Assembly: GCA_964035545.1 (NCBI GenBank)
Contig: OZ037772.1
Span: forward strand, 10,042,818 to 10,106,817
Length of the DNA: 64,000 bases
Source of the DNA: Bugula neritina
Taxonomy: Eukaryota > Animalia > Bryozoa
Direction: 5' to 3'
Of the stretch, positions 656 to 64,000 are shown in pieces. The position numbers and the translations under genes were made by a program. The notes below the pieces were generated by a model. That model ran no database searches, had not been told where the DNA came from, and saw only the letters and a program-made list of their open reading frames with translations. How positions within the stretch are numbered: the first letter of the stretch is position 1; every line of letters begins with the position of its first letter.

Positions 656-1825
656 TGACGCCTTATTGAATTATTAATAGTAATAGCATGTTTTAATTTA
701 TGATAACGCTAACTCTACATCTTACTCTTAGTCTAATTATTGATGCAATTTGAATAATGAATTACACATTATGGTGCCTATATTTTACCAAGAAATTTTA
801 AGGTCGGATCAATTATTCTGGATGCTAAATTGATGATTACTATTACTATTAGTTCATATTGATATTGTAATTATAAAGATTTAGTTTTGCCACTTTTCTT
901 TAATTGGAGTCTTTCAAACCATTTCGTTTTATTAGTTTTTAGTAAGAAAACAATCATTATGGTTGCCAGAAATGTGACTATGACTACAAGTACAACGTGG
1001 TGACTGAAGCAGTCACAAAATAGCATTTTTAGTTTCAAATGTCAAAGGGTATTACTCATCTGGTTAGTAGTAAACATTACCAGGCCAGAGGTTTAGAAGA
1101 TATACAAAATACTATTAGTGAGAGTGTTTATGCTGAGATTTAGAAACAAGGCAATTTTATTACCGAGTTTAATGAATTTTCATCAAAATTACTTAATGTT
1201 TTGAAATTAATTTTACACTGATTCAGTGTGAAATTTAATGCTCAATCACTTATAGACAATTTTAAAAGTTTATTTGGAAACTTGGTGTTGCCTTTATTGG
1301 ACATGTCAAATTTCTCTTTTTGCAATTTTATTTACAAAAGGCAGTTTAATGTAATTATATATTTTAAATCACTTGCAGTTGTGTACTATATCTTTTTTGT
1401 CACATGTTTAGCTGTTTTCTAATTCTATTGTAAGTAAATTTTATGAAGATGCTTTCAGTCTTTACATAGACATTACAATGTATTCGTAACCTGAAACAAG
1501 GAAATTATAAAGTTGAAAGAACATTTAAGAGATTGTCACACATTACATCCTCAAAACTAATAGTGTAAATTTGTAGTTTTTTACACAATTTGCTAGATAT
1601 TTAATTAGTTAAACAACTTAAGACTGCACAACTTTCCGCACTATTCAAATTGAAACTAATAAATAACCAATGACATTAAATTTTAAAAAGCTTGTGGGTT
1701 TTAGCCTCCCTGATAAGTTTGATTAATTAGCTACAGTACTTACAGTTTATTTCACAGATCACTTGAAGGGGTCATAAGCAGGATACCAAAGTATATTTGA
1801 GGCTTAAGTTTGAGTTTACAAGACG

Positions 1826-4800
1826 ATGGCCCTTACATTTCATGTAGCTGAGCCGTGGTCCGGTACTGGGTGGCCTGTGTCCTTATTTGACGATAAGGTG
1901 AGTTGATGTAACTTGTTACTACTCAACTTTGTGTCTAACAAATGAATATGTAGTGCCAAAACTCCCTTTTCAGCTTGGTCTATTGTCTAAACTATATGTT
2001 GGTTCTAAGATAGACTTTTCTCTTCAAGGAGTATTGATATACCAGAATAATGTTAACTCTGTTTAGCAGAATTCATGTTCATTGATAAATTTATTTATTA
2101 CTAGAACAATATTCAACCAGTATAATTTGCCCGAATTTCAAGAAATTATTTTTCAGTAATTTTGAAGCGGAAATATTTCATTTTATTGTAAAGCGTGGCT
2201 CGTGAAGATGTTTTATGACTAGGTGTGTTTCAGATAGAATTGATGTCAGTCTTTAATTTTGTGTATAATGTTGCGTGATGTAGGTTTCTTTATTGGAAAA
2301 GGGTATATATTTTTGCACCCGAGAAGAGTGCTGTAAAACCGAAAAGAGGATCACCAGGGAACCGTGGCAGTTCAGTTGCGGGCATCGAGTCTGTAGAGCA
2401 TGTCATGATCACATCCGAGATAACTTGTGAGTTGAAGGAATTATGCAATAATTTTTTATCTGTATGTTGACAGCTTAGTGCCGCGTTTATTCATTTAGTT
2501 AGTAATTTAATAATGTAAGTTTTTTGACAACTATGAATATACAACTAGGATATATGCTCCATGTAAGAGAAAAATTAGGTAAAAGCATTGGGCAAAGTTA
2601 CATGATAGCTCTATATAAAACATTAGCCACTTCACAGTATAAAATGCATTTATAATATATAATTTATCATTATAATGATAAAGTCAAGATTATTTGTAGC
2701 TTTAAGAAAATGTTTAAATTAATTTTTGAAACTTGGAAATACAATTCGATTTGTCAGCAACATTTCATCTTTTTACTAAAAACTAAACTTTTCAGCTTTT
2801 GCTGCTTTGGGTTATACATTATCCTACAACCAGATGTAATATTTTATAGACTGGAATCCCAGCAAGTGTGCGATGCGTGTAAAAAGGAGCCTGAAAGCGA
2901 TGATGCAATCCCTTCAGAGCTAAACGCTGGCAATAAAACCTCCAATATTTCAACCAATCAAAACTCAGTTATTAATAAATCATTTGACGGGGCAGCACTA
3001 AACTCTCAACTAACCGCCGCAGCAAATAGTTTGACAGCTCCTAGTCAAGTAATTCAGAAGAAACAGATTGGACAAATTGGTGTGTATTAAGTGATTCTCG
3101 TCAGCACAGTATTGTATTGTTAATCAGTTTATGCGCTATGCTGACTTTAGTGATCTAGTTGGTTTGACACATAGAAGTTAGGATATAATAAACCCTTTTA
3201 GCTATTATATTTCAACTATTAAAAATTTTAATTACGTGCATCTGGTTAGAGTTTCTCAGATTAAAATATTTTTTTACTATACATAGTAGTTAGTATCAAA
3301 GGTAAAGGCCATTGGTGATGTTAGGAAGAACATCCAGTCATAATTGATCCTGTGCCTCATTTAAATAAGTCCTTAGCCTAATTTAAAGAAAAACCCTTTT
3401 TATCAGGGGTTCTCTCACAGGGATAGTGACTATAAACTTGTGTGAGTTTTTATAGTAACTAGTATCAACATCCTGTACTAACATCTACCAACATGCTGAA
3501 TGTAGTATGCTAGCCCACAACTTCTCTGTTTATTGATGCAGACTTTGAAAAAGCTAAGTCCGACTCGGCTGCAAACAGAGAAATTAATAGAATGGTGGTG
3601 ACTTGCCCCTTTGAATGTGGCAAAGATAATCTCACAATCAAAATTTTAGAGGTATGGCCATCAGCTAAAATTTGAATTGTTTTCTGGTGTTCATAGAAGT
3701 TATGAAAGTAGGGGTAGTAGTAATAGTACTTGTAGTAGTGGTGGTAGTAGTGGCGGTGGTGGTGGTGGTAGTGGTAGTACTAGTAGTAGTGGTAGTAGTA
3801 GTAGCGGTGGTAGTAGTGGTAGTGGTAGTAGTCGTAATAGTAGTAGGAATAGTACTTGTAGTAGCGGTGGTAGTAGTGGCGGTGGTAGTGGTGGTAGTGG
3901 TGGTAGTACTAGTAGTAGTAGTAGTAGCAGCAGCAGCAGCAGCAGCAGTAGCTTTGGATGCAATATCTTTGGAATCATTATTGACGCTGTAGCTGATCAC
4001 TCAACTGTGACATGATTTGACTTTTACAGAAACACATGCGCTCGTGTAAGGAGAGGCAAATGCGTTGCGACAATTGTGCAGCCATTATCAAGCCTTCCGA
4101 ACAGGAAACTCACGTCTGCTTTAGTCCTGGAATGGATGTTGCTATGGAAACAGAGTCAGCTGTGAGTCAGCCTGTTATATATATATATATATATATATAT
4201 ATCTGTGCGACTTTGAGTTTTGTAAAAGACGCAAGCACTGAGTGAAATATTCTCCTTTCGTTGGAAATTGTTTAATATATTCAATAATATATATTGGCTC
4301 AGTGTTGTGCTGAGGTTTAGATGTTCTACTAGTCGGTGTCGTATATGTAGGGTGCTTCCGGATCAGGCAATATTATTCCGATGGAATCAGACTCTCTAGA
4401 GAAGTTTATACCGGATCCGACATCGGCAGCATGCCAGAGTGCCGGCAGCGATGTGGCGGCAGCCAGGCCTGACTTGTCACAGACTTACCCTCCTGAGAGT
4501 GGTATATATTACATAATGTATTAGTAACATGTTTGGCCTCGTGGAAATGGTATATGTTATATATATTAGGAAGTAGCAGTTGATATTGAATGTTGTTGAC
4601 ACAACACTAGATTGTGATTGGTTGGCTGTCTGTTATCAAAAGGAGACTAGTTCCAGAATCTTCTGATAAAATAAACTAACTCTACTTTTGTATTAAGCGA
4701 AAATTGCTTGAAGCAGCACAGAGTTAGTGGTCACTGAGTGCATTCATCCAGGGTCTTGAGTTTGAATAGCAGTAGGTATAGGAATAAGGGTCATCAGTCA

Positions 4801-6028
4801 CCCCAACTCAGTGCTTCATCTAGCGATATTTCTATAAAGCGGTGAAGCTAGTTCATAACTCGTCTCCAGCCTTTTTTAACTAATACTGAAGTCATCTTAT
4901 GTTTTTTTGTGTTCTCCTATTTAGTTGGCATCTATTTATGGTGTAGGAGAACCAAAAGAAAACTTCTTTGTTTAAAATTATGTTATCTATTATTTGATTG
5001 GCTAACACAGTTTTAGTTGATTTTCTGTATAGTGTCTGCCATGTTTGTCATACAGTATTTGTTTACATCTCTGTAGGTGACCACCAGATAGACACGGCGT
5101 CTGCACAGATGGTGGTGGACAACTCTCTAGGTAATTCTAATCTCTGGTTGGTTGGTCTTACATTAGCTGTGATTAGTCAATAGCTTGATTTTTATATTAG
5201 TTTATAGTCACTATCCCTGTGAGAAAACCCCTGATTGAAAGAATTTTTGTTAAAGCAGGCTAAGGACTTGTTCAGATGAGGCACAGGGACAATTATGACT
5301 GGATGCTCTTCCTAACATCACCAATGGCCTTTGTCTGGGCTCAAACCCATGACCTTGTGTTTACTAGGCAACCGCTCTAACCCCTAGACCACGGCTGCTC
5401 TCTGAAATGCTAACTTTGTGATATATATTTTATACTTGTATATTTTATACCATGGTTGCAGACATCTTTCATGAGCGACATTCTATAATTGGTTCTATTA
5501 TTATTCAATTAACTAGAAAACGTTTGACATAATCTAAGATTTTCTGTTTTTAATGTTTTAGGAAATGTATTATCTATTAATTATTTAATACTTATTAAGA
5601 TGTTTATATCAAGTGCCACCCCCCCCCCCCCCCCCGTATCTCAAAACCTCAACTCGTGACACGATAGAATACCATATTGAACTCAAGGATATTTTAAATT
5701 CACCCATTTTGTTCCTATACACACATACAAAAGCCACAAAACTTTTGGAATTTCGTGTGGAATGGAGCTGTGAGATATTGAGAGAGCACTCGTACTACAA
5801 TGTGTGAAATTACCTCTAACAAAGGGGTAAACCCTATTTCCAATATTCTAGAAAGATCTTCCACTCTTCCTCTACATACTATTCACCTACCGACTATTTG
5901 CAGGTGCTAACCAACCTAACACCATGTCTATGCAAATGGTGGCAGACGATTCTATAGGCAGCAGTCGTGCTGCCGCTAGCGTTGGCTCCATAAATGATCC
6001 ACCCCAACCTTCCTCACACAGCGGCTAG
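1826..6028 (+). CDS. TRAF-like paralogue A, truncated: RING + about 2 Zn fingers + low-complexity tail, no coiled coil or MATH; 338 aa
   Basis: Exons 1826-1897, 2284-2426, 2850-3079, 3542-3651, 4030-4161, 4351-4501, 5077-5130, 5904-6028; all GT-AG, 1017 nt in frame. Begins MALTFHVAEPWSGTGWPVSLFDDK; RING CTREECC..CGHRVCRAC..CDAC; DSAANREINRMVVTCPFEC; KHMRSC..CDNC. Exons 1-5 match B, C and D in phase and sequence. Exons 6-8 rest on splice sites and frame only. Confidence 0.8.
3301..3447 (+). mobile_element. SINE copy, 5' truncated
   Basis: Core ggccattggtgatgttaggaagaacatccagtcataa and 3' end gactataaacttgtgtgagt. Confidence 0.8.
3705..3951. repeat. Compound trinucleotide microsatellite (GTA/GTG/GCA)n in TRAF-A intron 4
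   Basis: Lies between donor 3652 and acceptor 4029. Confidence 0.95.
5200..5400 (-). mobile_element. SINE copy
   Basis: Reverse complement of the family from gtttatagtcactatccctgtgag to cccctagaccacggctgctc. Confidence 0.85.
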
Positions 6029-7274: not shown

Positions 7275-10200
7275 TTAATTGATAGAGCTAGGTGTAACTT
7301 CCTGAATAGGATAATTCAAGCCGCTGAGAGACTCGTGAGAGCTATTGATTATAATTTCAATGAAAAGTGTGTCGTCCACCAGAAAGCCTGCAACAAGACA
7401 ACTTCTACAAGTCTTTATTATAACGGGTATTTCCTGTTAATTAGTATATATTCTTAGTAGTTATTTTATGAAAGCAAACGATTCATTGAATGGTGAAAAA
7501 AGGTGAAAGCAGCCTTTAAAGATCAAATCGTGATTTTTACAACTCTGAAAAATCGCCATAATTTCAATTTAATAATTAAAAAGGTAATAAAACAATATTG
7601 AGGATTACAATGATTCATTGTGACATCAAAACAAAAACTCTAGTATGAATATGTGACGCGATGTTTTACAAAACTGATCATATTGTGTCATACCCCAAAT
7701 AAGGAGAAAGATTATTGCAAAGTTAGAAGCTAGCTATTATATATTTTAAATAAAATACTTTAAACAATAAAATTCTAACATAAACAAGCTACAGTAAAAA
7801 GTGCTATGTTAATATACTCGATGGCAAAAAAGAAAAAAAGTCTTTTTTTAAATATTGCAGATTAAAAGATAACGGTTAGAATATATAGAATTATCCAGAA
7901 ATACAATTCACAAGACACCTGATAAATCCCATGACACTTAGAGAAGGTACTCTTGTGAAAGAGGGGGACATGAGTCAATATGAAAAGACATACTTATTGC
8001 TACCTGTACATTTGCTTACAAAGAATAAAATTTGAACCACTAACCGTTGTCTGTGTTGAAGACGTAAGATTGCTCTGCAAACTTCGGTACTCCCGAGGCT
8101 ACATTTCGCTCATTTCTCGGCTTTTGGAAAGAAGGCGAATTTGTATCGGGTTGAAACTTCTCCACAATATCTGGTTTTTTCTTAAGAATGTTTCTCAGCT
8201 TGAATGTAACCTGAAGGAAAGTGTATTTAGAGTCTTTATTAGTGATTACATCAGACGGAAATGGAATTATAGATTATCACAAGTAACCATTTTTGAAAGT
8301 TTTACAAGCAGTTTGCAGATCAGAAATCCCAGCTTTGCAACCAATCACATTGAAGCTTACAATCTAATATAACGTATGTGAAGTATGTCATCCAATCATA
8401 AAATACAATATCTCCCGTCACCCTGGTAACCCTTTTTGTTACCATGACACCAGTGCAATATTATTACCTCTTCCAATGCGTGAAACTTGTGTATAATAAT
8501 TCAGTAAGATATAATAAAGAAATGAATGCATACTTTCTGATGGAAAGGCCATGTCAGTAAAGCATCAAACTCTCCCTTCATCAGTACAAAAAAGAGCGAA
8601 ATATGAGAATTTCTTCCATTCCCATCACCTGAAAGCAGTATAAACAGATTAGTATATCACCTACCACTAAGACAACTAAAGTCATAGTAAAGTGGAATAT
8701 TCTAGAATCATCAGTAGAGATGAATGAAATGCCTATCGCACAAAACTCGCAATCTAAACTAATAAATGTCTTGCTTCTTGTTACACGAAAAATTTATTTC
8801 TATCGGAATTGAGCAATTTAGCTCATGGGTATCAATAAATGATGGCTACACAAACCTAAACTCTCAATATTACCACTAAAACCATAGTAAGGTGGAATGT
8901 TCTAGAAAGAGCCAGAGTAATAATCTACAGAGTGTAAGGTAGCCGATGGCGACAGAAGGAGAATTTGACTAACCATTAAGGTAGAGTCTGGCGCACATCT
9001 TGTATCCGTAGACTTCAGTGTAGAATGGGTGACTGAAGATGCTGTGTCTAGTGTAGGCGTCTTCTCTTCGCCTCTGGATATTGTCCACTCTCCACACCAG
9101 ATGTGAATTGAACGACGTCTGCAAGTAAGAACCCAGCCAATTTTAAAACTATGTAAATAGCAACTCAAAGAAAATAAATTCGTCCAAATAAAATTAAAGT
9201 GATTTAAACATTATTTATGGTTGGGTGCAGCTTTTCCCTGGCATGATTGCTCTATGTATTTCTTTAAAACACATGATTATGATATCCCAGTAAACCCACC
9301 ACCTACAGCCCAGTAAACCCACCATTCCTTACAACTTGTTTTAGCATTTTAAAAAGTCAAGCTCTCTTATAACACAACATTATAATACACAAAGTAAACC
9401 AGCCAATAACTCTGGCTAATAAAACAGAGAAAAAAGAGAATCATACCATCTGCAGTTGGTTCAAAGCAGTTTTCTGATCTTCTATCTCTGCTACTCTGAT
9501 GTTTGAGAGAGTTTCCAGTTTGTTGAGCTGCTCCGTAGCGTCATTCTCAGTCTTAGTTGTCTTCTCAGTCAGAGCTCTAAACGTCGAGTCATATGACGTC
9601 AACCTGGTCACAAGGTCAAGGAAATATAATTTTATTGAGTGGAATTATCTCCCTATTGTACATGAGTGAAAAGACTCAAGTGATTCCTAAACTAGTGATT
9701 AAAAAATTGTCTTCTATTTATACCTGAGCCTTCAATAATTGATTATGAATATTTAGGCTGTTTTTAAAATATTACTATGACACGGATAGTAATTATTTGA
9801 AATCCGAAATATACATAAATTAAGGGTAAACGGGCATAAAGACAGATGATAACTTTAACCCTTGAACTCACGGTAAAGTCATTAGAGTCAACAAAGAGTT
9901 GACTGTAACTAAAACAAGTTACAATATTCTTGCTACTAAGTGAATTCCCCCGCACACAAATATCTCTACAGTCTTTATTCACATAAGCTACTTGACCAGA
10001 CATGAATAAGGAAAATTTACTATGTGTACAATCATTTGTCCCTTTGTTTTGGCCGACTTCTGAACTAGGTCATCGAGCAAAAGAAGTTGCCCACCGTGGC
10101 CTAGAAAATTCTTAGTATTGCTTCATTTTGTTAAGCCAAGATCTCTGCTATCATTAGATTCACAGAAACTTCTTGACTATACATGAACCATGACAACTAG

Positions 10201-19797: not shown

Positions 19798-22700
19798 TCA
19801 GCCATTCCAAAGTGTCACCTACAGAAAAACCTCATTTACCTGGCGATTATTAATTGAAAAGTCAAACCAAACAGTCAAAATCCTAATAAACAACAACATA
19901 CTTCCTGACAATGCACAAACTTGAAAATAACCAACAAGTATAAATCAATTAAATTGAATTATCAGACAAGACATGTGGAAATAGATTCTATTACCTGGCC
20001 ACAGGTATCTGGGCTGTATGCGACACAGTGTAGGAGGTGCGCCTTACGCCCCGTATCAAAGCTGTATACCCCATTACAGAACTCACACTTGATAGGTTTC
20101 TTCAAACACTCCAGAGAGTGATGCTACAGAAGACGCAATGTTCTTCTAATAAAAATATGAAACTGAAATTCCAAAAACTAAAGTTTCGCGTTCGAAGAAA
20201 AGCACCGTTTAGAGTTGCCTTCACTTTGAAGATGGCATAAACTTGCACCGAAAGAAGCGAAACTAGTAAAAACAAGAAGTTAATGTAAATACTGCTAATA
20301 GTCTGAGAAACCTCTTTTGAAAGCATGCTAAAGACTTATTCATATGTGGCACAGGAATAATTATGACTCAATGCTCTTCCTAACATCACCAATGGCATTT
20401 ACTGGAGATTGAACTCCTGACCTCGTGTTTTGTGCTCCCTGTAACACTGCTGCCTACTTACATACAGATCTCTGCCCAACAGTCCGGTTACTCCGCACCC
20501 ATTCGGACAGCTGACTTCACGCAGCAAGCACTCTTCTTCAATGTGTTTCGTCAACTTTGAGAAGGTGACGGGCTGAACACACTTTTCACAAGGCACCAGT
20601 CTCTCCTCACACCGGTGCATGTGTCTCTACAAAAAAACCAACTCTTTCGGGTTTCGAAGCCTTTCAATGTGCCGGGAGCGGAAAGGCGAGGAAAAAAGTG
20701 GCTGAGGCAAAAGAGAATGATGACAACATGAACAAAGGGCAGGCGAGATAGTTTTAATAAGATAACTCCTAAAAACTCAAGAAAAAGATGCGGTAATAAT
20801 ATATAATTGACATGTGACGACGACAATATTACTGGGCGACAGAAGTATCCAGATTTGATTACAGTTACGTAGCAAAAGCAGTACTTCTACAACACAATAG
20901 GATAATTCATTTTGGCTCTAAAAAAAGAAAATAACTCCTAATCATAATACCGTTGATTAAAGGAATACCTTTCTGCATATATTATAAAGTATGAAACTAG
21001 TTAGCAGTTTATGTAAAGCCACTTGTTGATATTGATACTTTCAAACAGAACATCACTGTTGGCTGTAAAATAAACTCACTCACTCACTGACTCACTCACT
21101 CTCTTACTCACTCTCTTACTCACTCACTCACTCGCTGTGAGAAACCCTTGATGGAAAGTGTTTTTATCAAAGTAGGCTAAGGACTGATTCATATGTGGCA
21201 CAGGAGCAATTATGACTAGATGCTCTTCCTAACATCACCAATGGTCTTTGTCGGGGTTCGAACCCATGACTTTGTGTTCACAAAGCAAACAATCTAACCC
21301 CTAGACCACGGCTGCTGATTAGAAGTAACGCAATATCTTATTTTAATTTGTTAACAAATGAAGAGTTTAGTACGAAGTGATATGTAGCTGGGCTTCAACT
21401 GAAGCCGAAAATTATTCAAAAACTGGAAAATCTGTATTTACCTCTAGAGCTCTGACAACCAGCTTCACACTACAATACGGGCACCGAACCGAGATCCGGT
21501 TGATCTGCCTCTTCACAGCGTTGTCCCCAGAGCAGTTATCAAAATCTGCAAGAGAAGCCAAAGTTGTAGAATAAATTACTTGGTAGATTTGAGATATTAT
21601 ACTTATACGACAACAAGAATGCCAGATTTAATGGTTTATATCGCAGAAGTCGAAGAAGCTTTTTGAAAAGCAATATCAATTTCGCTTTAGTGGTTTCCCA
21701 CAGCCAAAGAGTTGGAAAAGCACTTTGATGAAACAGTGAAAAAAGGTTTCTATTCGCTTTTTTAAATAAAAATAAGACATTAAGAAAACACGTTGAAATT
21801 GTAAATAGAAGATTAGAAGAAAATGTGCATAAAATCTAAAACAAAACACAGTAAGCTCAAACTTAAGTATATACCTAGAATAGCCCAAGTAAAAACTTAC
21901 TCAATTATCAGAAGTGTAGGCATATACTATAGTCTTAGTGTAGGTATATATCTAAATGCCAAAGGTAAGTGTATACACTATACATATTAGGTATATAGTG
22001 CCTATAGCCCAAGATTTAGTACATATCTATAGCCGCACCTATAATACAGTAATCAAGATAGCATTTCGGGTAAGTGTCATATCTGCCATACGTATTCCGA
22101 GATGAAGGGACAGCGTCGTAGGAAAATGCACCCATATCCCCGAAAAGTGTTCCGGGGGGCCAAGTATTAGTATACCCATAATCTCCCGGTTCCATCGCAC
22201 ACCGGTCACATATTTGTTCCACTTGCGGCCTGAAACCAACATGGAGACAAATACTCAATAGCTTGGGAATCCCCCAAGAAATAGTACTCAATAGCCTAGG
22301 AATCCCCCAAAAAATAATCCAACTACGTAATACTGGTCCAAGAAAATAACTAAAAAGAACTCTTATACTTACATCGACATAATGTTTGGCTAATTATGAT
22401 ATAATATATTAAAACGTAATGCTACATATGCTATAACATATTAAATAATATTATAATATAGTGCAATAGAATATTAGTAACCAAAGGCATGGCATAGAAA
22501 GTATATACAGTATAGTACACCAAACACAAAAAGCAAATAATCAAAAAGATGTTGACGCGAGATAATATAATATAATAAATTATGTGCAACAATTAACTAC
22601 AATACACTATACTACAATAATAGTAAACTACAATAAGCCATATAATAACATTTCAATGATCCTATACTACATTATAAAATAATGCAATGCATAACAATAT

Positions 22701-26503: not shown

Positions 26504-29500
26504 ATGACATCGGGGAATGCGAGACGTGGCATCATCGAGCCCTGGCACGGTTCTGGCTGGCCAGTAGACTTGTTTGAGGATAAGGTGAGTTAGCAGTAGT
26601 CAATCTGATACTAATACTCCATGGTTGCCATAGTGATTTGTCATTCGAGTGACTAAATATTTGTATGAATATTATTCTAGGCTTTTCTTGAAGAAAAAGG
26701 AGTCTATTTTTGTTCTCGGTCCGAGTGTGGGATTAATAATCGCAGGATCGTAAGAGAGCCATGGCAGCTGAATTGTGGGCACAGAGTGTGTAAAGAATGT
26801 CATGATATACTCAGAGCTCTGTAAGTTTTCAACTGCTAACTCATTGAATAAACTCACACAATATGTAGTCACCATCTCTGATAGAAAGGTTTTTTGTTAA
26901 ATTGGACTAAGGAATTATTCAGATGTGGCATCGGAGAAATTACCAATGGCCTTTGTCGGGGTTCGAACCCATGACTTTGCGCTTACCAGGCAAACGCTAT
27001 AGCCCCAAGACCACGGCTGCTCCATTGTGATTTCATTAAATCCTTTAGTTTATTGTTACTTTGACTTGTTCTTTAGGTATTGTAGGGCACTCACATCAAC
27101 GTCTTATCTGTGTGTGTTCTAGATTTATTAATTCATATAAGTTTGAATATAAATAAGCATTATGGATTGATGTTGAAATTTGCTGACAATGTGTTTAGAC
27201 CAGAAGACCTGCAGCGATGCGAGGCCTGCAGGAAAGAACTCTTTGATGAAGGAAATTACAACTCAGATAAAAGGTTAAGGTTAGCATCCGGTCATGATTT
27301 TCTCAATAAAGATGGGATGTCCTATGACGCTGTCCCACCTTCTACTTCTCAACAGCCCAGTCTAGCAGATGAGATTCCAACTGAATTACCCTACAAAATA
27401 GGTACAATAGATTTCCTGGTAATTTAGATAGTATTTATATAACAGTTATTGTTTTGCTAGCTTTGATTTATTTTAAAATCATTTAAATTTGTTTCCAATC
27501 ACAGTTGGTTTGGAGTAACTATGTCAGGTTTTACACATTAAGTCTTAGCTCGTGTTCCATCCATTAAGTACACGAGGTTTTGCTGTCATAGATTTCTCAA
27601 TCGCCATGAAAGACAATGCCGCACACAGAGAAATTAGCAGGCTCTTGGTAATCTGTCCGAACGGGTGTGACACGCCAGCAAAGTTGACTCTTAGAACTCT
27701 GGAGGTATGTTTATTATATTCACTAATAGATTATAGGGTTCTTGCAATGCTAATTTATTCTCTTACGCAGTATCATATACTTTATATGATAACTCTCTAT
27801 ATATTATAGTGATATTGTTGCTTTTAAACTCAACAGTATCGTGCATTTGATAGGGAGTAACCGTGGTCTAGGGGTTAGAGCGTTTGCTTTGTGAACACGA
27901 AGTCATGGGCTCAAACCCCGGCAAAGGCTATTGGTGATGTTAGGAAGATTATCCAGTCATAACTGCTCCTGTGCCTCATTTGAACAAGTCCTGTTCTAAT
28001 AAAAACCCTTTCCAACAGGGATAGCGACTATAAACTTGCATGAGTGAGTATCGTGCATTAGATGAAGATTTTTTTATATATTATACTCCTTTCTGTTTAC
28101 AATCTCCATTTCTGTGAAAACTCCAGAGTTTCTTTAAAGAATCGCCAATGGTCCTACTATGCCAGCACTCTAATTATAAACTATAAATCTTTACACATTT
28201 TTAATAAAACTTTCAAGATGACGACAAATATGTCTCCCTTGAAAGCTTGCCTACTATAGAAAGCAACTTCCTCATTCATCACTGTGACTAGTTTAGTAAC
28301 ACACTACACAATCAAAACAATCTGCTGGCCCGAGATGGAATTTTGAGTCAAACGAATAGATACAGAGCAGTTTTAATCATATTTTCTGGAAGCTTCCAGT
28401 GTTTTAAACCTCTACTACCATTTGTTTCGCTGCAAAGCTTGAGTTTACAGACTTTGACCAAACTAAAGTTCGGTGTGTTGCGAGAAGATATTCAAAAACC
28501 ATTGTTTGACTTAGCGTGCTGCGTTTCTAACAAATGTCCTTCTCAATTATAGAGTAAGTTTTCTGTTGCTCATATCTGTATGCCAGACATTCTCAGTAGA
28601 ATAATTAATTGTTCACCTGATGGAGAATTGATGTTCAGACTAATACATCAGTAGTCTAATTGATTACAAGGTTTCTCTACCATTACAGTATATACATTAC
28701 CTATTATTATGTCATTGGGATTGGAATGGCAACGTTTTGGTTGTTTGGCATGTGGTTATTCATATTCATGTGAAAGAATCATGCAGTAAACAAGTTTTTT
28801 GCTAGGCTTTTATTGAAGCGGGCAGCATTTTCTAGTAATTAGTTGCGAAGTTGGTGGAAATAAAAGTTTACTCATTGGAAAAACCCAAAAATTACGCAAT
28901 AAATTTTTTTTTGTAATATGGAGTTGGCAATAATCAATGACAAGTGAAGTGCTGTTGGCACAGATAAAAGCCACTTGTATGGCTGAATAAACATCTATGT
29001 ATAGTGGAAATGTTATGTTAGTGTTTAATGGTTGTTAGGTAGGATGCAGTCTATACTATGCACATTTGTACTGTTTCTAATTGCACTAACAAATATGCAA
29101 TAATATTCTATTCTATATCCGCTTAGTAGCTTTGTCCTGTTCAGTAGCAGGACTCACAAATATACAATAATGTTCTCAAAATGGCGGACACCAAACTAAT
29201 TTTCTTTCTATTATGATGTCATATCCTGACTTGTATGAACTGATGATTTGTAGAGACACATGGAAATGTGTCCAGAAAGACGGGTTCCCTGTGAGAAATG
29301 TGCTGAGGTTATCAAACATTCAGAGAGAGCTGAACACACCACCAAGTTCTGTCCCTTCAGGATTGTGGAATGTCCCAACAAGTGCGGTGTGGCTGGCTTG
29401 AGGGCCAAAGAACTAGCAGTAAGTCAACACTTGATGACAGCTTCCAAAAATTCACATTCTCTTCCTAGAGTTACCGGTTCTGTGTATTAATCAGACCGAG

Positions 29501-29911: not shown

Positions 29912-32900
29912 ATGATAATTTTTCTTATGCTTTGGGGGGAAGGCCATATTTGGTCCTGGAGCCGCCTGTTACACAGCCCTGTGTTAGAGTGTAACCATTC
30001 TTGTTATTTTACAGCAACACTTGAATGAGTGTGAAAATAAACCACCAGTGTGTAACATCTGTGGAAACTCTTTTGGTGTTGACGAAGACGCAGCCTCCCA
30101 TCTGATGAAATGTGTTGCTTATTGTCCCCTCAACTGTGGAGAGGTAAAATACTATTATATTACACTGTATATATCATATTATATTACACTGTATATATCA
30201 TATTATATTACACTGTATATATCATATTATATTACACTGTATATATCATATTATATTACACTATATATTACTCTGTAGAACAAGAAAGTTCAGGTGGTGA
30301 AACACTTGAATGAAGGAAAGCGTATGGACCAACACCTGAGGTTCATCAAGGCTGAGTTACGCTCCGCAACAGCGCAGAGTAGTAGCGGCCCTGCAACTGT
30401 CATCTCCCAGTCCCAACTCTCCGATCTCCAAAAAAGACTTTTGACACTGGAGAACCAATCAGACCGAGCTGATAGAATGCTGGTGAGTAGTGATTTACAT
30501 TAAAGCTCTGAATACATGAGTCATTAGAAAGTATTAGTAATGGCTGCCATACCATAACTCTGTTCTCTGATACTCGTGGACTCGCGCAAGTTTATAGTCA
30601 CTATCCCTGTGAGAACCCCTGATAAAAAGGGTTTTTTGTTGAAGCAGCTAAGGACTTATTCAGATAAGGCACAGGAACAATTATGACTGGATGATTTTCC
30701 TAACACCACCAATTGCTTTTATTGATATTTGAACCCATAACTTTGTGTTTAGTAGGCACACGCTTTAACCTCTAGACCACGGCTGCTCCCTCATAGTTCT
30801 GATTACTCTTACATAATTATAGTGAGTTCTGTATGTCTGTATAATTTCTCAAACAGAAGGACAAGGTGCATCACATGACCCCTGAAATGGCCAAGGGACT
30901 TCTGGAGAATGTACAGCTGGCCCAGAGAAACCGTCAGGATCTCAATGACTTGAATTCTCTGTTTAAAACCGTAGCTCAGGATGTGCACAAGTAAGTGACT
31001 ATGTGCGGGTGTCTCTATCAGACCTCCCTACTGCTTTAGTCTTCCTATATAGGTCCTCTGTCTAACTGGACTTGATTGACTACAACTCTATTTGAATCAA
31101 TTTCTGTTTGTTAGGAAAGGAAGCAAATTATACGTCGTCTAGCCTCAGTTTTTCAATAGTTTACTAACCTAGCTACTGTCAGTTCTGTTTGAACTAGCCA
31201 ATTTCTCTCTCACAGGCTAACATCGTATGAAGCTGCATTTCGTGCTCTGACGGAGAAGATATCGAAGACTGAGAATGAAACAACAGAACGACTCAACCGT
31301 CTGGAAACTCTTTCAAACATCAGAGTAGCAGAGATAGAAGACCAGAAAACTCTCCTGAGTCAGCTGCAGATGGTATGATTCTCTTTTTTTCGTGTTTTGT
31401 TAACCAGAAATCTCTCACTGGGTCTCTGCTACAGATCTGTTCACTCTACAAGGATCTTTCAACTCAGCTAGGTTTTGTGATGAACAAATATTTACTTCTG
31501 GGAAAAGATCCACACTTATGTTGGTGTTTTAGTGAACGCAATACACTTGTATGTTTTGGCCTGAATATTCCCTTTTGGGCAAAGTGATTTAATTTTCAAA
31601 AGCAAAATATTCAAATATTTTCCTTTCTGTCGACTGCCTAACTGTTTTCGTCTCACACACATATGCATTTCAATTGGCTCCATAAAGGTCAGCCTGATTT
31701 CTTACATTCCAGACCTCGTACAACGGGCACCTCCTCTGGAAGATCACAGACGTACAGAAACACAGAGACGAGGCTGCAACTAGACACAGCATATACAGTC
31801 ACCCTTTCTACACCGAGACCTACGGATACAAGATGTGTGCCAGGGTGTATTTCAATGGTGTGTACTCTAGAGATCCTTGTAGAGGCTGAAACCTTGTCCT
31901 CACTCTAAACTAGACTTTATAGTACTTGTGTGTCTTATTTCTTCTGCTTAAATATTTTAACTGGTTTTTAATGTTTGTTGACTAAGATGCATGTCTTCGT
32001 CTTTCTCGTGTTGCAATATCTAGATTTAGATTGTAAAGATAAGTAAAAAATGCAGTAGTATGGAGAAATTAGATTGTATAGCCATCATTTATCAATACCC
32101 GTGAGCTAAACTGCTCAATTTCGATAGGAATCAATTTTTCATGTAACAAGAAGCAAGACATTTATTTGTTTAGATTGCAAGTTTTGTGCCTTAGGCATTT
32201 CATTCATCTCTACTGATGATTCTAGAATATTCCACCTTACTATGACTTTAGTTGTCTTAGTGGTAGGTGATGTATTACTAATATCTGTGTACTGCTTTCA
32301 GGTGATGGGAATGGAAAGAACACCCACATTTCGCTCTTTTTTGTTGTGATGAAAGGAGAATATGATGCTTTACTGACATGGCCTTTCCAGCAAAAGGTAA
32401 ATACGTTGTGTCTGTTACTCAACTTTTTCGTCTGGGTGTACATCTAATTTCTTACGATTTTGCTTCACCAGCTGATAGAGTTCGTCTAGAATGCTCTGCT
32501 CCCAAAATAGACTCACCACTCAGCTGCTGTAGAGTGTAGAGTATATGTCATCCCACCTTAAATCAACTGTCTTATAAGTCAAGTCCTAGTTGTACCAGAC
32601 GTATAGAAAAGTAAGTTGATTTTCATTGTGGGCCGAGACATATTAGTATTTCTAATTTGGTTGTTCAGCCTATTGGCACATGATAGGAGGTGATTGACAC
32701 TTGATATGGGGTGATTGACACTTGACATGAGGTGATTGACACATACTAGGAGGTGATTGACACTTGACATAGGGTGATTGACACTTGACATGAGGTGATT
32801 GACACATACTAGGAGGTGATTGACACTTGACATGGGGTGATTGACACTTGACATGGGGTGATTGACACATGATAGAAGGTGATTGTCATGTGATAGGGGG

Positions 32901-33712
32901 TGATTGACACATACTAAGGGGTAATTGTCATGTGATATGTGATTGGCACATGTTGATAGAAAAATCATTTAAACTTATCTGAGTGTCCATTTACTTCCTC
33001 TCCGCAGGTTACCATGAAGCTGAGAAATGTCACCAAGAACCGACCAGATATAGTGGAGAAGTTCAGACCAGAGCCGAGTTCTTCTTCTTTCCAGAGACCC
33101 AAGAATGAGATGAACATAGCGTCTGGTTGTCCCCAGTTTGCTGAACAAGCTCACGTCTTCAACCCAGACAATGGTGAGCTCACACTCAATTGTTATCTAT
33201 ATTTTACGCTGCTAAATCGATCATTTAAGAGCAGTAGTGGAGAAATTGAGATAGCCTCAGTTTCTTTGAATTTTGGTTTGGTGCGCGCGTTGAAATTTTT
33301 CGAGAACATAACTTCTTTTGCTACATTTCTAATCTAGAGCTCAGGTTTTTTTCCATTGCTGTACCTGTCTCAACCCTATTGTCTCACTATTCTATGATTC
33401 GTTTTCTGCCAGTTTGAAATTATATTTAACTCTGTGTTTGCACTTCCATTTTATGTAAAGAATCTTATTAATTCCTTGCCTGTGAAGTATTTTAAGACAG
33501 TATTTATTGTCACAACTCTGAAGACGTACTAATGCTCTATTTATCTCTTCTTGGGTGCGGTGAGTTGCATCATGCTGTTTCTTGTAGGTTTTGTTGTTGA
33601 CGACACGATGTACATAGAGATCATGGTGGACAACTCCTACGAAGCTCTTCACGGTTTGAATATATCCGTTCAGGAAATGACTCGTGGGTATTCCAATAAT
33701 GGCGCAAAGTAA
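26504..33712 (+). CDS. TRAF: TRAF2/3-like paralogue D, full length; 618 aa
   Basis: 13 exons: 26504-26584, 26681-26820, 27199-27401, 27592-27704, 29254-29418, 30015-30143, 30279-30482, 30857-30990, 31216-31372, 31713-31857, 32302-32396, 33008-33173, 33588-33712; 1857 nt in frame. Canonical TRAF2/3 MATH motifs [49 protein letters not shown]. Confidence 0.95.
26866..27023 (-). mobile_element. SINE copy with internal deletion
   Basis: accaatggcctttgtcggggttcgaacccatgac .. ccacggctgctcc. Confidence 0.8.
27851..28050 (+). mobile_element. tRNA-derived SINE, near full-length reference copy (about 200-230 bp)
   Basis: A-box TGGTCTAGGGG and B-box-like GGCTCAAACCC. Core GGCYATTGGTGATGTTAGGAAGA..ATCCAGTCATAA; 3' end GACTATAAACTTGC followed by a (GAGT)n tail. 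About 13 copies in the window. Confidence 0.85.
29847..29906. repeat. (AT)n microsatellite
   Basis: About 30 units. Confidence 0.95.
30150..30272. repeat. 24-bp minisatellite x5 (tattatattacactgtatatatca) filling TRAF-D intron 6
   Basis: Occupies nearly all of the 135-nt intron. Confidence 0.9.
30580..30791 (-). mobile_element. SINE copy
   Basis: gcaagtttatagtcactatccctgtgag .. ctagaccacggctgctccct. Confidence 0.85.
32675..32958. repeat. 21-bp minisatellite (ggtgattgacacttgacatgg), about 13 copies
   Basis: Read directly; TRAF-D intron 11. Confidence 0.9.
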
Positions 33713-35342
33713 AAGTGAAAATAACTCCATCTTGAGCAAGCCCGGTGGTTGAGCTACTTGTGAAAGCACTCCGGATAAAACATGAAAAAGTTGAAATTCA
33801 ACTCATGACTTCATACAACTATATATATTTACTATGTTATACAAATATATATATTTACTATGTTAGGTGTTGAGTGCATTACTGTTACTTTATTAAGCAT
33901 TGCCAATACAGTCAAATAATGATAAAAAGTTCAGTTTAATATCACTTGCGATTGATAACCTATTCGAGGATTTTTTGTTTCTTTAACCAAATCAAACAGT
34001 AAAGTTGTATGAATATGATTAATTTATTAATTTTTATTAATTACTTGACCCTAATAATAAACATATAGTTGAATCTAGACAAACACTCTGTGCAACTAAA
34101 GACTACCTTCATAACTATACTAGCTCCAACAGATGACCTGCAATTGGTTGCTTGTGTTGAAAGTAATTTTACTAGAATCAGCATAAAACTTACATTTTGC
34201 AGCAAATTAAAACATTGATTATTTTCTGCTTTTTATGTTCTTTGGCAGAAAAAGCTTAACTGATTATTTATCAGCTACCAGAAACGGATTTAAAATATAT
34301 AATCATCATAATTTCACTGATGTATGAACATTTTGTGATGCATGAAATAAATGCTTAATGGCATTTATTTTCATTCAGTTTACGATGTTTCATTTTTAGT
34401 ATTTATGTAAATTTAACTACTTTTGTGTAGTATAATAGTAAACCCAAAAATATTGAAAGTTTCAAATTCAACAAAAGCTATTATCTAACATTTTATTATT
34501 TTATTAGCCATAAATCAGTGAAGATGCACTACAGTGTTTAACTTGCATATTTTTCTTCATATTCTTATTTTATTTATTTTTATATTACAAATTTTCACAA
34601 TAAAACACAAATTTTTTGATTAGTTTGTAGTTATTTTTATCGTATCATGATTCCATATATTTTATTCTAAAATACTGGATTTTATTTCAGTGCTATGTGT
34701 GCTTTTGTGCGCTTTCATACTGTGTATGCTCTATATTGTATGAGATGTCAAATTGGTTTATCTGTTGAACTTTACGTGTTTGAAATGACGTAATTATTAC
34801 TGATGGAATATGACACGTGTTGAATCAACAGAAATAGCTCGCTGTCTTTCCATGATGTCTGCCAATTACTGGTGTATGGAAAGACAGCGAATATAGCCAA
34901 TTTTTCATTCAAAATTCTTCCAAAATTTAAAAAAAATCAACTGATAAAATGGTTTTAAAACATTCAATTAATGCATATTTTTATTATTTGACAATAAAAT
35001 TATATAATTCTGTAAATAAAAATCTACTTTGTCCCCAACTGTTAGCAAAATTGAATAATGTAAGCTAGCCTAACATTATTTCATAAATATAAACAACAGT
35101 CTAAATAATTAATATAAATTTTAATCTATGATAAATTATAGAAAATACATAGAACAGTAAGAAACAACATACTAATGAAGAAACCAAGAGATGGTTGCAT
35201 AACTAAAACTGACAAAACTCTTGTCATAAATAAAAAATAAATTAACATTAGACACAATTAATAAAGTCACCGCTCAACAAATGCGTATCTGTCGCCGTAA
35301 TGCTCCTTTAAAATCTTGTTGGTATTTCTGGCTGAGCTTTCA

Positions 35343-38300
35343 CTATGGAGTTCCTTGTTTGGAAAACTCAGTTGAACTCCTTCTAAGAGAGCACAACTCT
35401 TTACTGTTTGTATAAAACTACAATGGATTTGATGTGCTAGCCAATCATGTCTCTGACATTCTTCACTGCAGTATCTGCCAAGAAATACAGAGCTGGATTA
35501 GAATCTATTCCATCAATAATACGAGCCACTGGTGAAGGTCAAATAATTTATAAGTATTTGATTATGGCAATAAATTTGTTAATTTAAATGATTGCATAGC
35601 AAAAAACATGGATTAAGCAGTTGAAGTATGAATTCATAGAGTTTGTTTGTTTGTTTTTATTTTGTCGTAGTCGGGAAAAAATTAATTGAGAAGAAATAAA
35701 CAAAATGACAGGGCCTATGGCGCATTAGCACTGTAGCTAGTCGAGGCACCGAGCCATGAATAGTTGACAGTTATATAAGATTTTTGTTTAGGTTTTTGGA
35801 AGTTTTAGCAACTCAAAAAGTATTATTTTTTTATCTAAATCAAACTATCTAGAAACCAATATCCAGGAAATTAAACTAACGCCACATATAGTGGAATTGC
35901 AAAAGCAGAAAACTGGACTCTTTCATGGGGTAAAACTGCTGAATGAACAGTGTGAACGGTTTATACCCAACAAAGGTCATTGGTGATGTTAGGAAGAGCA
36001 TCCAGTCATAATTGCTCCTGTGCCCTATCTGAGTAAGTCCTCAGCCCAATTTAACAAAAACCCGTTCCAGCAGAGGTGTTCTTACAAAGATGTCAACTAA
36101 AAACTATAAATTTTTTAATTCCGAAAAATATTGCAAAATTCCGCTCAACGTGGCTCTAGCTCAATGAATGAAAAATAGCATCAGATTAAATGCTCAGATG
36201 GTACAAGACCGACCAATCACCTGACAGATCTGCAGCCTCCACATGAATTGTACTGCAGGGAACACCTTTCTATGTTGTTACAAGGGAGGTAGTGACATTC
36301 ATAGATTCGTGGCTCCTGATTGGCTAATGTGTCGCAAGTTAATTTGATAGAGTCATTTTGATTGGCTAGCAGCAGTGCTTTGCACTGACTGATGATTGTC
36401 TCCTCCAATGAGGTTGGCAAATACAGAGCTTCTGGAACATTCTGGAAATCAATAAAGTTAAAAATAGACTCAGGCTAGTGGGAGTTATGGTCTCTCCACA
36501 CCTACTAATTTACTGTGTCATAAAGTGTGTCTAAATGATATGCATTGTAGTGAAAAAATAAGTCGGAAAAGCCCACTTTGAAATTACACCACAAAAAAGA
36601 GAAAGGGAATATCAAATACAATAATTGAAAAAAGTTTATTATAAACCTACAGAAATTTTCTGATTGAAACTTCTAAAAGTTTTCATCAAACTAAAATAAA
36701 TTCTTCTAATCAAATTAATTTCTGGCTCATAATTTTAGCAGCAGACGTAAGCAATTAAAGATCCAACAAGGTAAATCTGCTCAACCTGCTCAACTATAAT
36801 AACAAAAGTTGCCAACTTGTAAAAACGATATGTAACTTAATGAAACTACCTACCAGCTGTGATAGATACGGAAGTAGCTCGCTGATACAAAGGTTGTACG
36901 TAGAGGAAGTGACATCATAACACGTCCTGCCTGAGCAACGTTCAACTGCTGTGAGATTGTCTAGCCTGTTGTCCATAGGATTTCCATTTCTATGTGTAAC
37001 TATCTGTGTGGACGGAAGTTTTCTGGAGTGGTGGAGGCCCCTGCAACAGGAACTCTGGCTAGGTGTATAACGCAGAGTAAACTTGTGGTTATATAAACCC
37101 AAAACTGAATGATAGTGCCTTAACTTTTTAGCTAATTTATTCCAAATGCAAATATTCGAAACACTTGAGAAAAAATTCAATTTGAAGAGACATTTAAAAA
37201 CTGTAATTTCATTTAAAAATGTTTTTATTTAATGAAATGAATTCATAACTTTTAACAAAATTTAAACAAAGCAAGCAGCATTTAGATTTTAGAGTAACAA
37301 AGATGGTTTACATCACAGTGATAAAATAATCCATCTATTCTCACAATCAAACAATGAAGAATTGAAAGATTAGCCGACATACAGTCTAACACTGAATTAA
37401 GGTTTCCATACCATATGATGTCTTGGACAGGGGTGATAGAGCACCTGTCAACACTAGACTCGGTGTCAGCTTTGGGAAATGCAAGCACCTGCATATGTGG
37501 GTCACCACCATCTCCACCAAACGTCATAACAGCCTGAATAAGTCAAAACAGTTACAGCTTACACTAACCTGGGACATATTATTCACAAGTCAAAATCTAG
37601 CAGTTTCAGAATCTGACCACACTTTGTATGAACTCCACAAATGATAGAATGATTTAATTTATAACAACAGTTTGAAGGGCACATTTTTGTGGTATGACAA
37701 CTCCGATTAAATTCTGAATAAAAAATAATTCCAACTTCAAATAAATACAACATTATCTACTAAAATGCTGATCAACATATTTTTCACAGGATTTCACTCT
37801 AAAAAGCTAATGAGTGGATTGAATTACTTCTCAGTAGTGATTAAATTATATTTATAGTCAAACTGGATATTTACAATAAGTTTTGGTGGAAATAAACTTA
37901 ATACAGCACCAGTTATTAACTTATTTTGAGTCTAATTCACTGGTAACAGACATTCACACATGTTTATAGTCACTATCCCTGTGAGAAGGACTTATCCAGA
38001 TGAGGCACAGGAACAATTATGACTGGATGCTCTTCCTAACATCACCAATGGCCTTTGTCTGGTTCCAACTCATGACTCAGTGGTTGCTAAGCCAATCTAC
38101 CCCCTAGACCACGGCTGCTCCCTGCTCACTGATATAAAATACTACCAACTATTCACCAATACGAAATACTACTAACTATTCACTGATATGAAATACTAGT
38201 AACTATTCACTGGTAACAAATACTAGTAACTATTCACTGATAGGTGGGAATGGAACTCACCTTCAAGTGATAATTGTCAGCAATAAAATTCTTATCTTTG

Positions 38301-41300
38301 TCAAGCAGGCACAGCTTCAGCTACAAAACCAACACTTCACACTATCACAGCTGATAAGACATGATAAACTGTACACAATATACTACACAGATATAAACAC
38401 AGTGAGATATCATATATGTATTATATACTATGTATGGCAATAGATACAATAGTTACAGCAATGAGTAGTTACTACAGTGTATTCTCTCACTGCTAAGTTA
38501 GAATACAGGCTGATAGGATTATTGTGGTATTTATGAAAAAAATTGGTAAAAATAGTTGTACACTTGTATTATTTTTCATTGAAAATTTGTGTGTTAAATC
38601 AATTGGCAAATGTTTAAATAACTTAATTTGATTTTTTAAAGAAACTTTATGAGACAAAAGGCCCCTAAAGTACACTTTGAAACAGCCCTAGAGCTCAAAA
38701 ACAAATGACTGCAGAGTGGAAACTCATCCAAGGTCATCGCTGGATTACGCCTACAAATGTGGTGGAGCCCCAACTATTTTCACGCCTAAGGCTAATAATG
38801 GGCATACACTATATATTGTTTGTATTTAGAAACAGTAAATAAATACAGAAGAAATGACCTAGAAAATAATAATTTATATTTGCTGTTGCGAGCAAGAGCC
38901 TATAGAAGTTCAAATAAATAATGAAAGATAATAAATATATAATATTTTGAATAACCAGTATTTATGTACGGTGTCAATAGGAAAATAAAAGAAAAAATGC
39001 TAAATTAGCTGACAAAGTATCAGCAAGAAGCTTTAAATGTTTCATATTTGGGTTCAAAGTTTAGCCTAAGCATGTGACAGAGTTATTTATAGATGTTGGT
39101 ATAAAACCCAACATTTATGGAATATATAGATCCATCAACCAACTTATACCAGCATATTATCCACAGTATTCACTAGTAACTGAATACAGCAGATGATGCA
39201 GTGCATTACTGATGGTAAACAGCTGCTTATGTGACCATTCAGTGACTATTATATATCAACATTTCAGCTCCCTATAACATGAATCTGCTAGATGAATACA
39301 TGTAATGATAAGCTATCTGAAACTTTATACTTTACATATCTGAAACTGGTCAAAGATCAAAACAAAGAATTTTTAACCCCAACTTGTTTTTTATATTCCA
39401 ATGTGTAAACAAATAAACATAATGTATGATTTGTATTGTAATGCTGATACACAAAAGGAAATTGTTGTAATGTCAATTCAATTTGAGAAAAATAATGTCC
39501 ATTAAAGTAAACAAATCTTCACAGAAATGGTTCAGTGGAACAGTGAATAAGAGTTATTGAATTAGATGGGTCATTTTTTGGTTTGGTAAAACACAATAAT
39601 GACGCCTGGGTTTTTTAGAATTGTACATTAGTTGCACTTGGTTTCCTGCTCCAGCTTGTAGAGCCAATATTCAATAGACTCACTCACGTTATAGTCACCA
39701 TCTCTGTGAGAAAACCCCTGATGGAAAGGCTTTTTGTTAAGGCTTGCTAAGGACTTATTTAAATGAGGCACAGGAGCAGTTTTGGCTAGATGCTCTTCCT
39801 AATATCACCAATGGCCTTTGTGGGGGAGGGGGGTGGTTTGAACCCCTTACTACTAGGCAAACGCTCTAACCCCTAGACCGGCTGTAAAGCCATTATTCAA
39901 TAGAATTTAGTAAAACGCAAATGTTATCAGAATTTTCCAGAATAATAAAACATTTGTCAGTGCTATAGCTGTTTCAGTTTGCTAGAAGAACCTTGTCGAT
40001 AGCACAAGTAGGTTTGGAGTGCGCATCACCAGTTGAAACAATAAGATGGGTGGCCACATTAATATTGATGAGCGTTAGAGTTAATAACCAGCATAGAAAT
40101 TATTGAAGTTTGGTTGCGAGATCAATATTTGAATAGAATATGCTGTGTGTGGTACTAGTTATCAGCTGTGACCATATGACAGGTTTCCCAAAGTGTGCAA
40201 GCACCTTGCTTGGCATCTGACAACAAGCAGCATGTGCTTGCAGGTATTGTCTCAAGAACAGGTTATAGTTGCACATTAGAAGCAGTCCACAGCCACTTTT
40301 CACCAATTGATATCTTACTCCAACGGTAATGCTGATTGCTAGCTAGCTATAGTAGTTCTCATGGACGCGGTTAATTATACCAGCAGTAAATCATATATGT
40401 GATAAAATTACTATTTGAGTCTATAACTTGATACTAATTTATATTTAAGTGAGGTGTTAATTTGCAAAAACAATGATGCAAGATTTTTTTGTAATTATAT
40501 TTGAATCAGCACAGGTAAAGCGTTAATAGAAATGCTTTGGCAATTACAGCTGGCAGTTCTGCCTAGGGATAGGTCTAGTTAACCATTTATAACAGTTTAA
40601 CATTTACATAGCAGCTTGATGCAAGGAATAATGTCAGCTTGGTAAATGTCCTAGCATTCAGAATAACATTTACAGTTATACTTAAGTGAGCTAGCAGCAG
40701 TGATAGCCTGGGGAGAATACAAACAGACTGACACCTAAACACGCCTACAGTGTTTAACTTGAACAGAAAGAACATGGGCTATGCTAAACTTCTGCATTAT
40801 TTGTAAAGATTTCAGTGAAGTTTGAACCACATCGACTAGATTATTTCAAAAGAGCTCCAACTGAAATTTTTAAGAGTTTGAGTTAATTGATTAAAATGAT
40901 ATAAAATGCGCATACAGTTAATATTTTATATGAGAACCTGCATTGCTGCATTTAAACCTGCACTTTGGGGATTTGGAAGCTATTATAGAAAGATCATTGT
41001 GTTTATTAGGCATAAAAAGATCAATAGAGGGTATTAGTTAAATATGCTAATAGTGGATGTTTAGTTTGTGTGTTCAGGAGATGATCTACCCCATAATGAT
41101 ATGTCAATAGCTGTAGCATACAGTATAATGCTTTCACAAACACTCAATGTTGCATATTTGCTTTAGCAAAGTGTAACTCAGGGTGCCTGTGAACAACCAG
41201 CGGAATATTTGCACACTTGTTATACGGTGTCAGCAAATGTCAAGCCTCTCCCAAGCTTCTTTTTTGGCAATAAAAGTGACAATAAATTTTCAAACTCGTG

Positions 41301-48460: not shown

Positions 48461-64000
<15,540 letters not shown>

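Follow-up and report, generated by a model that had tools for sequence, protein, structure and literature searches.

Whether a TRAF can carry its own receptor-like peptide is the question raised by the locus described here. As adaptors, TRAFs are hubs of signalling by TNF receptors and in innate immunity, and the peptides of receptors and of adaptors are believed to compete for, and thereby to regulate, the groove in their MATH domain that receives receptor tails. The motifs in TNF-receptor tails that occupy it, with binding in the range of 10-500 micromolar, include PVQET in CD40, PIQEE in OX40 and PIQED in CD27. Two neighbouring TRAF3-like genes of the bryozoan Bugula neritina, TRAF-B and TRAF-D, share a C-terminal tail that is under selection and resembles such a TRAF-bound receptor peptide; the binding of this tail to a TRAF is plausible but putative. 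If binding does occur, the pair would be a natural and simple case of built-in competition or of TRAF-to-TRAF networking. Should the match be coincidental, the tail is a lineage-specific conserved segment in an expanded invertebrate immune-gene family, and of modest interest. To our knowledge, control by a tethered self-ligand is undescribed for TRAFs, and our literature search returned no report on TRAFs of Bugula or on a TRAF with a self-binding tail.

The window analysed, by which we mean the whole stretch of 64,000 nucleotides, is AT-rich animal DNA with four TRAF-like genes. TRAF-A lies on the plus strand (1814-6000, starting at about 1.8 kb), TRAF-B on the minus strand (from 15.9 kb to 7.3 kb), the TRAF-C gene, hereafter paralogue C, also on the minus strand (23794-19965, from 23.8 kb to about 20 kb), and TRAF-D on the plus strand (26.5 kb-33.7 kb). 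In this window, MATH exons are recognisable only in B and D. Paralogues A and C have N-terminal exons in common with B and D, and neither a MATH exon nor a tail could be detected for them within the window.

The last five exons of D are confirmed by spliced RNA contigs (Logan, three runs), in which the joints 31372>31713, 31857>32302, 32396>33008 and 33173>33588 are all of the GT..AG type. The first of these exons (31211-31372, plus strand, as are all exons of D) has a heptad-like sequence and is a candidate coiled coil (TRAF-N). It is followed by MATH exon 1 (31713-31857), by MATH exon 2 (32302-32396; Pfam MATH, 49.3 bits), whose closest PDB match is TRAF3, with GYKMCARVY in common, and by the penultimate exon (33008-33173; Pfam TRAF-mep_MATH, 31.3 bits), which aligns to TRAF2 and TRAF5 and holds the groove elements SSSFQRP and NIASGCP. 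Each of the latter two, as a single exon, passes the cut-off of Pfam PF21355 (27.4 bits). The last coding exon (33588-33712), preceded by an acceptor AG at 33586-33587, encodes the last MATH strand (14 residues) and the 26-residue tail and ends with the stop codon at 33710-33712; RNA contigs span this tail exon and extend into the 3' UTR as far as 33900 or further. Towards the N-terminus, the exon at 29254-29487 scores 29.4 bits with zf-TRAF (cut-off 27), and the RING exon gave only sub-threshold matches of 17-18 bits, TRAF3_RING among them. The best database match to D is a protein annotated as "TRAF3 [Bugula neritina]" (P0002, assembly GCA_010799875.2), 94 aa long and covering half a domain, in which the last two exons are spliced as in our model of D. 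On the minus strand, the penultimate exon of B (8045-8210) contains altered groove elements, NSPSFQKP and NVASGVP, and its last coding exon (7275-7387) reads FLVDDTLFIEIIIN, then the tail SSHESLSGLNYPIQEVTPSSIN, with the stop codon at 7277-7275. Judged by their sequences, both genes encode TRAF3-like adaptors of B. neritina, with a predicted RING-like finger, TRAF zinc fingers, a putative coiled coil and a MATH domain.

The MATH exons find their best PDB matches in TRAF3, TRAF5 and TRAF2, and they align to the TRAF-C domains of vertebrate TRAF3, TRAF2 and TRAF5 (PDB 1KZZ, 1CA9 and 4GJH) with E-values of 1e-10 to 1e-15. Like vertebrate TRAF2, TRAF3 and TRAF5, D has a TRAF zinc finger, a putative coiled coil and the groove signatures, its residues at CARVY-NGDG, SSSFQRP and NIASGCP being those of TRAF2/3. 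B departs from the vertebrate proteins in the groove, where the Ser triad has become S-P-S and the Cys has become Val. At the C-terminus, vertebrate TRAFs stop 4-8 residues past the last strand, with endings of the LTGL or TSDLPDP type, whereas B and D continue for 22-26 residues. The PDB alignments of D to TRAF2, TRAF3 and TRAF5 end at IEIMVD; thus, the tail of D lies beyond the canonical TRAF-C domain.

The D tail comprises 26 codons past the end of TRAF-C homology (33632-33709, plus strand), and the B tail 22 residues (7343-7278, minus strand). Codon-by-codon comparison and a pattern scan delimit a shared block, E-x-L-x-G-L-N-x-[PS]-[IV]-Q-E-x-T, which aligns without gaps and occupies 33641-33682 in D and 7334-7293 in B. 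Within it lie the core SVQE of D (33665-33676, or 33665-33682 as SVQEMT) and the core PIQE of B (7310-7299, or 7310-7293 as PIQEVT). The two tails are identical at 10 of 22 residues, a level reached by none of 200,000 shuffles, and after the final T of the block they have one of five residues in common. When back-translated, the block pattern occurs in the window at these two sites only, with 0 expected. A first-pass annotation of this DNA had placed SVQEMT at the end of D with the correct sequence and coordinates; its gap-free alignment of the D tail to B and the divergence that it described after the T are likewise confirmed. It had also remarked that the P/S swap stays inside the TRAF2 consensus, which is so, P and S both being permitted at -2, and that the motif is kept between diverged paralogues, which is true of the two genes B and D in the window.

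Both cores were compared with the known classes of TRAF-binding peptide. The short TRAF2-type MATH-binding consensus, [PSAT]x[QE]E, corresponds to ELM class LIG_TRAF2like_MATH_shPxQ_1 (PMC10767929). SVQE of D and PIQE of B both match this consensus, which is loose enough to turn up in TRAF proteins at 0.0016 per residue and so has a 3-4% chance of occurring in a tail this long. The matching site follows the point at which every solved TRAF-C domain stops, and it falls in no matched domain. The TRAF3-type motif, PxQx[TS], fits neither P-I-Q-E-V-T of B nor S-V-Q-E-M-T of D, because the Thr is at +3, not +2. Nor does either sequence fit the TRAF6 motif, PxExx[aromatic/acidic], with Gln at 0 and Thr at +3 in both and Ser at -2 in D. 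Searches of PDB and Pfam with the tails alone gave no match and no domain, and no other motif class was found in them. PIQE and SVQE are like the TNF-receptor tail motifs in fitting [PSAT]x[QE]E and in belonging to an end segment that is part of no domain; they are unlike them in that the candidate motif is on a TRAF itself, right behind its own MATH domain, and in having the Thr at +3.

Selection on the tails was assessed with orthologues from a second source. In assembly GCA_010799875.2, the counterpart of window positions 30153-35611 (L002) has introns that are 12-17% different, with many indels, and exons that are 97-100% identical in protein. Divergent introns and near-identical exons make L002 usable as the D orthologue from a second B. 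neritina lineage, and the window and this assembly would represent either two cryptic lineages or very divergent haplotypes at an immune-gene cluster. DNA contigs from a second sample of the study that likely supplied the window are also about 10% different. Over the C-terminal half of D, comparison of the window with L002 gives a dS of 0.21 and a dN of 0.007. One of the 26 tail residues has changed between the lineages (N to G, downstream of the motif), and nucleotide identity is 96% in the tail, 91% in the 3' UTR and 84.5% in the intron. For B, the orthologue lies on a Logan contig (L003). Its tail, SSHESLNGLNFPLQEVTPSSIN, departs from that of the window in three conservatively replaced residues and has five synonymous changes (pS 0.345, pN 0.058). 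Pooled over the B and D orthologue pairs, pN/pS in the tails is 0.24 (one-sided Fisher p = 0.016), a value that rests on small counts of 5 nonsynonymous and 6 synonymous differences. The motif is kept in the second-lineage orthologues of both genes: Q and E do not vary among the four sequences, and the residue at -2 is always P or S. The PSSIN that follows the motif is also unchanged between the B orthologues, despite two synonymous changes. Because residues behind the motif are kept as well, the constraint extends past the motif itself. Tail dN between B and D is 0.42, against 0.07-0.23 for the MATH exons, so the tail changes at about double their rate, yet its dN stays well under the saturated dS. 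These comparisons support purifying selection on the tail, less strong than on the MATH domain.

The tail has a narrow distribution. Among the best 150 of 523 significant TRAF relatives, from a search of 1.84 billion representative proteins, it is present only in P0002; the number of residues after the last strand in these 150 has a median of 7, and they are typically TSDL or LTGL. Bryozoan-type relatives on metagenome contigs end 4-8 residues past the domain (with KGIEPPTT in L001 and AHHQ in L006), and a word search with P0002 matched only Bugula-type fragments. A first scan of JGI metagenome contigs with the back-translated DNA pattern, in a form without Leu at -1, gave 0 matches, and a second gave two chance matches in bacterial ribosomal protein L5, at its C-terminus; short Bugula contigs seem to be absent from that collection, and the two scans therefore carry little weight. 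An intronless D-like copy on a contig of JGI metagenome 3300002729 (L010, 1314-1726) contains frameshifts and stops and is most likely a processed pseudogene; it has 6 changes in the 26 tail residues, in which a stretch of 12 residues can still be read.

A third long-tailed paralogue, whose copy in this genome is outside the window, was recovered from a Logan contig of SRR4020084 (L012, 407-1220). Its tail of 26 residues has NSH-x-SL-x-x-L in common with B and D and then continues with PNIPINAEAE; alignment of the DNA suggests that the motif was destroyed by a 10-nt insertion with a frameshift after N-I-P-I. The groove of L012 is degenerate, with PASCDRP and YTAMCP in place of the signatures and with the Ser triad and the beta-7 signature gone, and the copy may be either decaying or changed in function. 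A tree built from the final 70 residues of MATH, too few to resolve it well, hints that L012 is nearer to D than to B. Even L012, which lacks the motif, has the conserved tail start NS-[YH]-x-[AS]-L, and the first six or so residues of the tail resemble an elaborated form of the TSDL/LTGL cap common in other TRAFs. On weak evidence, the motif looks ancestral to the small B/D/L012 clade, probably as P-I-Q-E, and lost once. By the sequences compared, it is no general TRAF feature and belongs to one small bryozoan clade only. The first-pass annotation had described the conservation as the pattern left by selection on the motif. Selection is borne out by the pN/pS of 0.24, but its restriction to the motif is not, the tail start and PSSIN being conserved too. 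Loss of the motif in other species, which the annotation had named as telling against its reading, holds in part: the motif is destroyed in paralogue L012 and the tail is absent from the other TRAFs examined, whereas the orthologues of B and D keep the motif.

How might such a tail act? We tentatively suggest, at distinctly less than an even chance, that it is a built-in pseudo-ligand for the TRAF MATH groove, engaged in self- or cross-binding. The [PS]-[IV]-Q-E core would then sit where receptor peptides lie, in the groove of a MATH domain of TRAF2/3 type. The likely targets would be D bound by its own tail or D bound by the tail of B, since the groove is canonical in D and altered in B. Binding could be intrachain, or could join chains of the same trimer or of different trimers, and its outcome would be either competition with receptor tails, that is autoinhibition, or the cross-linking of paralogues into larger assemblies. 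In TRAF2 structures, the C-terminus would be close to the lower edge of the cap, at the exit of the receptor peptides; the distance from the domain end to the core is presumably about 5-10 residues, as judged by TRAF2 geometry, and reach into the groove of the same chain is uncertain. With only 5-10 residues for looping back, binding to another chain may perhaps be favoured over binding to the same one. Known pseudo-ligand tails include the C-terminal tail of Src on its own SH2 domain and the IBB segment of importin-alpha; the likeness to these would be one of logic only, a ligand-like peptide tethered beside the domain that recognises it, and is an analogy without homology. The fuller picture, of a TRAF with its own receptor-like peptide, in which D is autoinhibited or the B tail occupies the groove of D and the paralogues regulate or cross-link one another without a receptor, we consider unlikely, though not fanciful. 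For a pseudo-ligand we count that the tail starts where the TRAF2, TRAF3 and TRAF5 structures end, that Q-E is invariant, that the groove of D is canonical, that L012 has lost both motif and groove, and that the tail exon is present in spliced RNA. Against it we count the 3-4% chance of a match to a motif that was spotted after the fact, the constraint beyond the motif, the faster evolution of the tail than of the MATH domain, the confinement to one small clade, the Thr at +3, and the losses in L012, which also fit a general decay of that copy. Our estimate weighs the prior for a pseudo-ligand in a conserved tail beside a peptide-binding domain against this chance rate and against the several motif classes that might have been noticed.

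A tail under selection may also have a function without being a ligand of TRAFs, and to this we give a serious chance, if one a little short of even. It could be an extension of the TSDL-type cap, packed on the MATH sandwich or on the trimer, or it could be where some other partner docks or adds a modification, for example a kinase, a deubiquitinase or a further adaptor; the [PS]xQE match would then be a coincidence, which a rate of 3-4% per tail allows. Such a function would suit a constraint that spans the whole tail, from an NS-[YH]-x-[AS]-L shared with L012, where many TRAFs end in VD-TSDL or LTGL, to the invariant PSSIN with its synonymous changes. It would suit equally the tail of B, which is at least as constrained as that of D although the groove of B is altered. 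What it leaves unaccounted for is the retention of Q-E and of a permitted residue at -2 in both paralogues across saturated dS, and the tail, in which no other motif class or domain was found, gives it no nameable partner.

Two further explanations were weighed. A shift of the stop codon in the ancestor of B and D could have left a weakly constrained leftover that has no specific function and whose likeness is due to ancestry alone. That no part of the C-terminal half evolves faster than the tail (dN 0.42), that it is missing from the other TRAFs among the best 150 of 523 and dispensable in L012, and that the pN/pS rests on so few differences would all be in keeping with this. A neutral tail, however, would not hold 45% identity at a dS of about 1.9, the orthologue pN/pS is below 1 (p = 0.016), the tail of D has diverged less than the intron and UTR on either side of it, and the pseudogene L010 has gathered its six changes over the same 26 residues. 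Disfavoured by the pN/pS of 0.24 and by the comparison with L010, a neutral leftover is improbable. Recent gene conversion could likewise have made the B and D tails alike, and conversion or concerted evolution does appear active in this pair: a 346-nt stretch of MATH exon 2 and its upstream intron is 88% identical between B and D, which carry common lineage-specific variants there. This tract, however, stops at the donor site of MATH exon 2, short of the tail. Over the last exon, blastn finds no match between B and D, nucleotide identity is 62-64%, and dS is about 1.9, nearly every synonymous third position able to differ being different; the tail of each paralogue is nearer to its own orthologue than to the other paralogue. 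By exon (Nei-Gojobori), dS between B and D is about 1.9 in the last, 1.8-2.0 in MATH exons 1 and 3, 0.9 in the coiled-coil exon and 0.7 in MATH exon 2. Recent conversion with high synonymous identity, which the first-pass annotation had named as what would undo its reading, is thus excluded for the tail by the missing blastn match, the low identity and the saturated dS, and we give it next to no probability. As far as these comparisons go, the extension of 22-26 residues is an inheritance of B and D from their common ancestor, kept by purifying selection and not by gene conversion.

Within the intron just upstream of MATH exon 2, about 245 nt (D, 32055-32301; B, 8873-8627, minus strand) are 88-93% identical between B and D, more than the synonymous sites of any exon. 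The same stretch is kept in both second-lineage orthologues, and the paralogues share lineage-specific variants in it. It has no Rfam match, and its RNA structure is without covariation support. These observations point to concerted evolution or to a conserved non-coding element.

The window also contains an interspersed repeat of about 200 nt, in at least 12 copies with identities of 65-88%, many of them in TRAF introns. Copies lie at 5195-5400, 21130-21320, 27850-28050, 30580-30780, 35950-36130, 37980-38120, 39680-39880 and 50120-50330, among others; tblastn with the last exons of B and D found no match in the stretch of the window that contains one of the copies. Repeats also lie in the introns of D (30153-30268, 32672-32910 and 33174-33357): a 24-nt minisatellite, present in 4.8 copies in the window and in more in GCA_010799875.2, and a 21/63-nt tandem array. 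Within the last D intron, the stretch 33174-33357 has very high depth in the contigs of the sequencing runs and is therefore probably a high-copy repeat.
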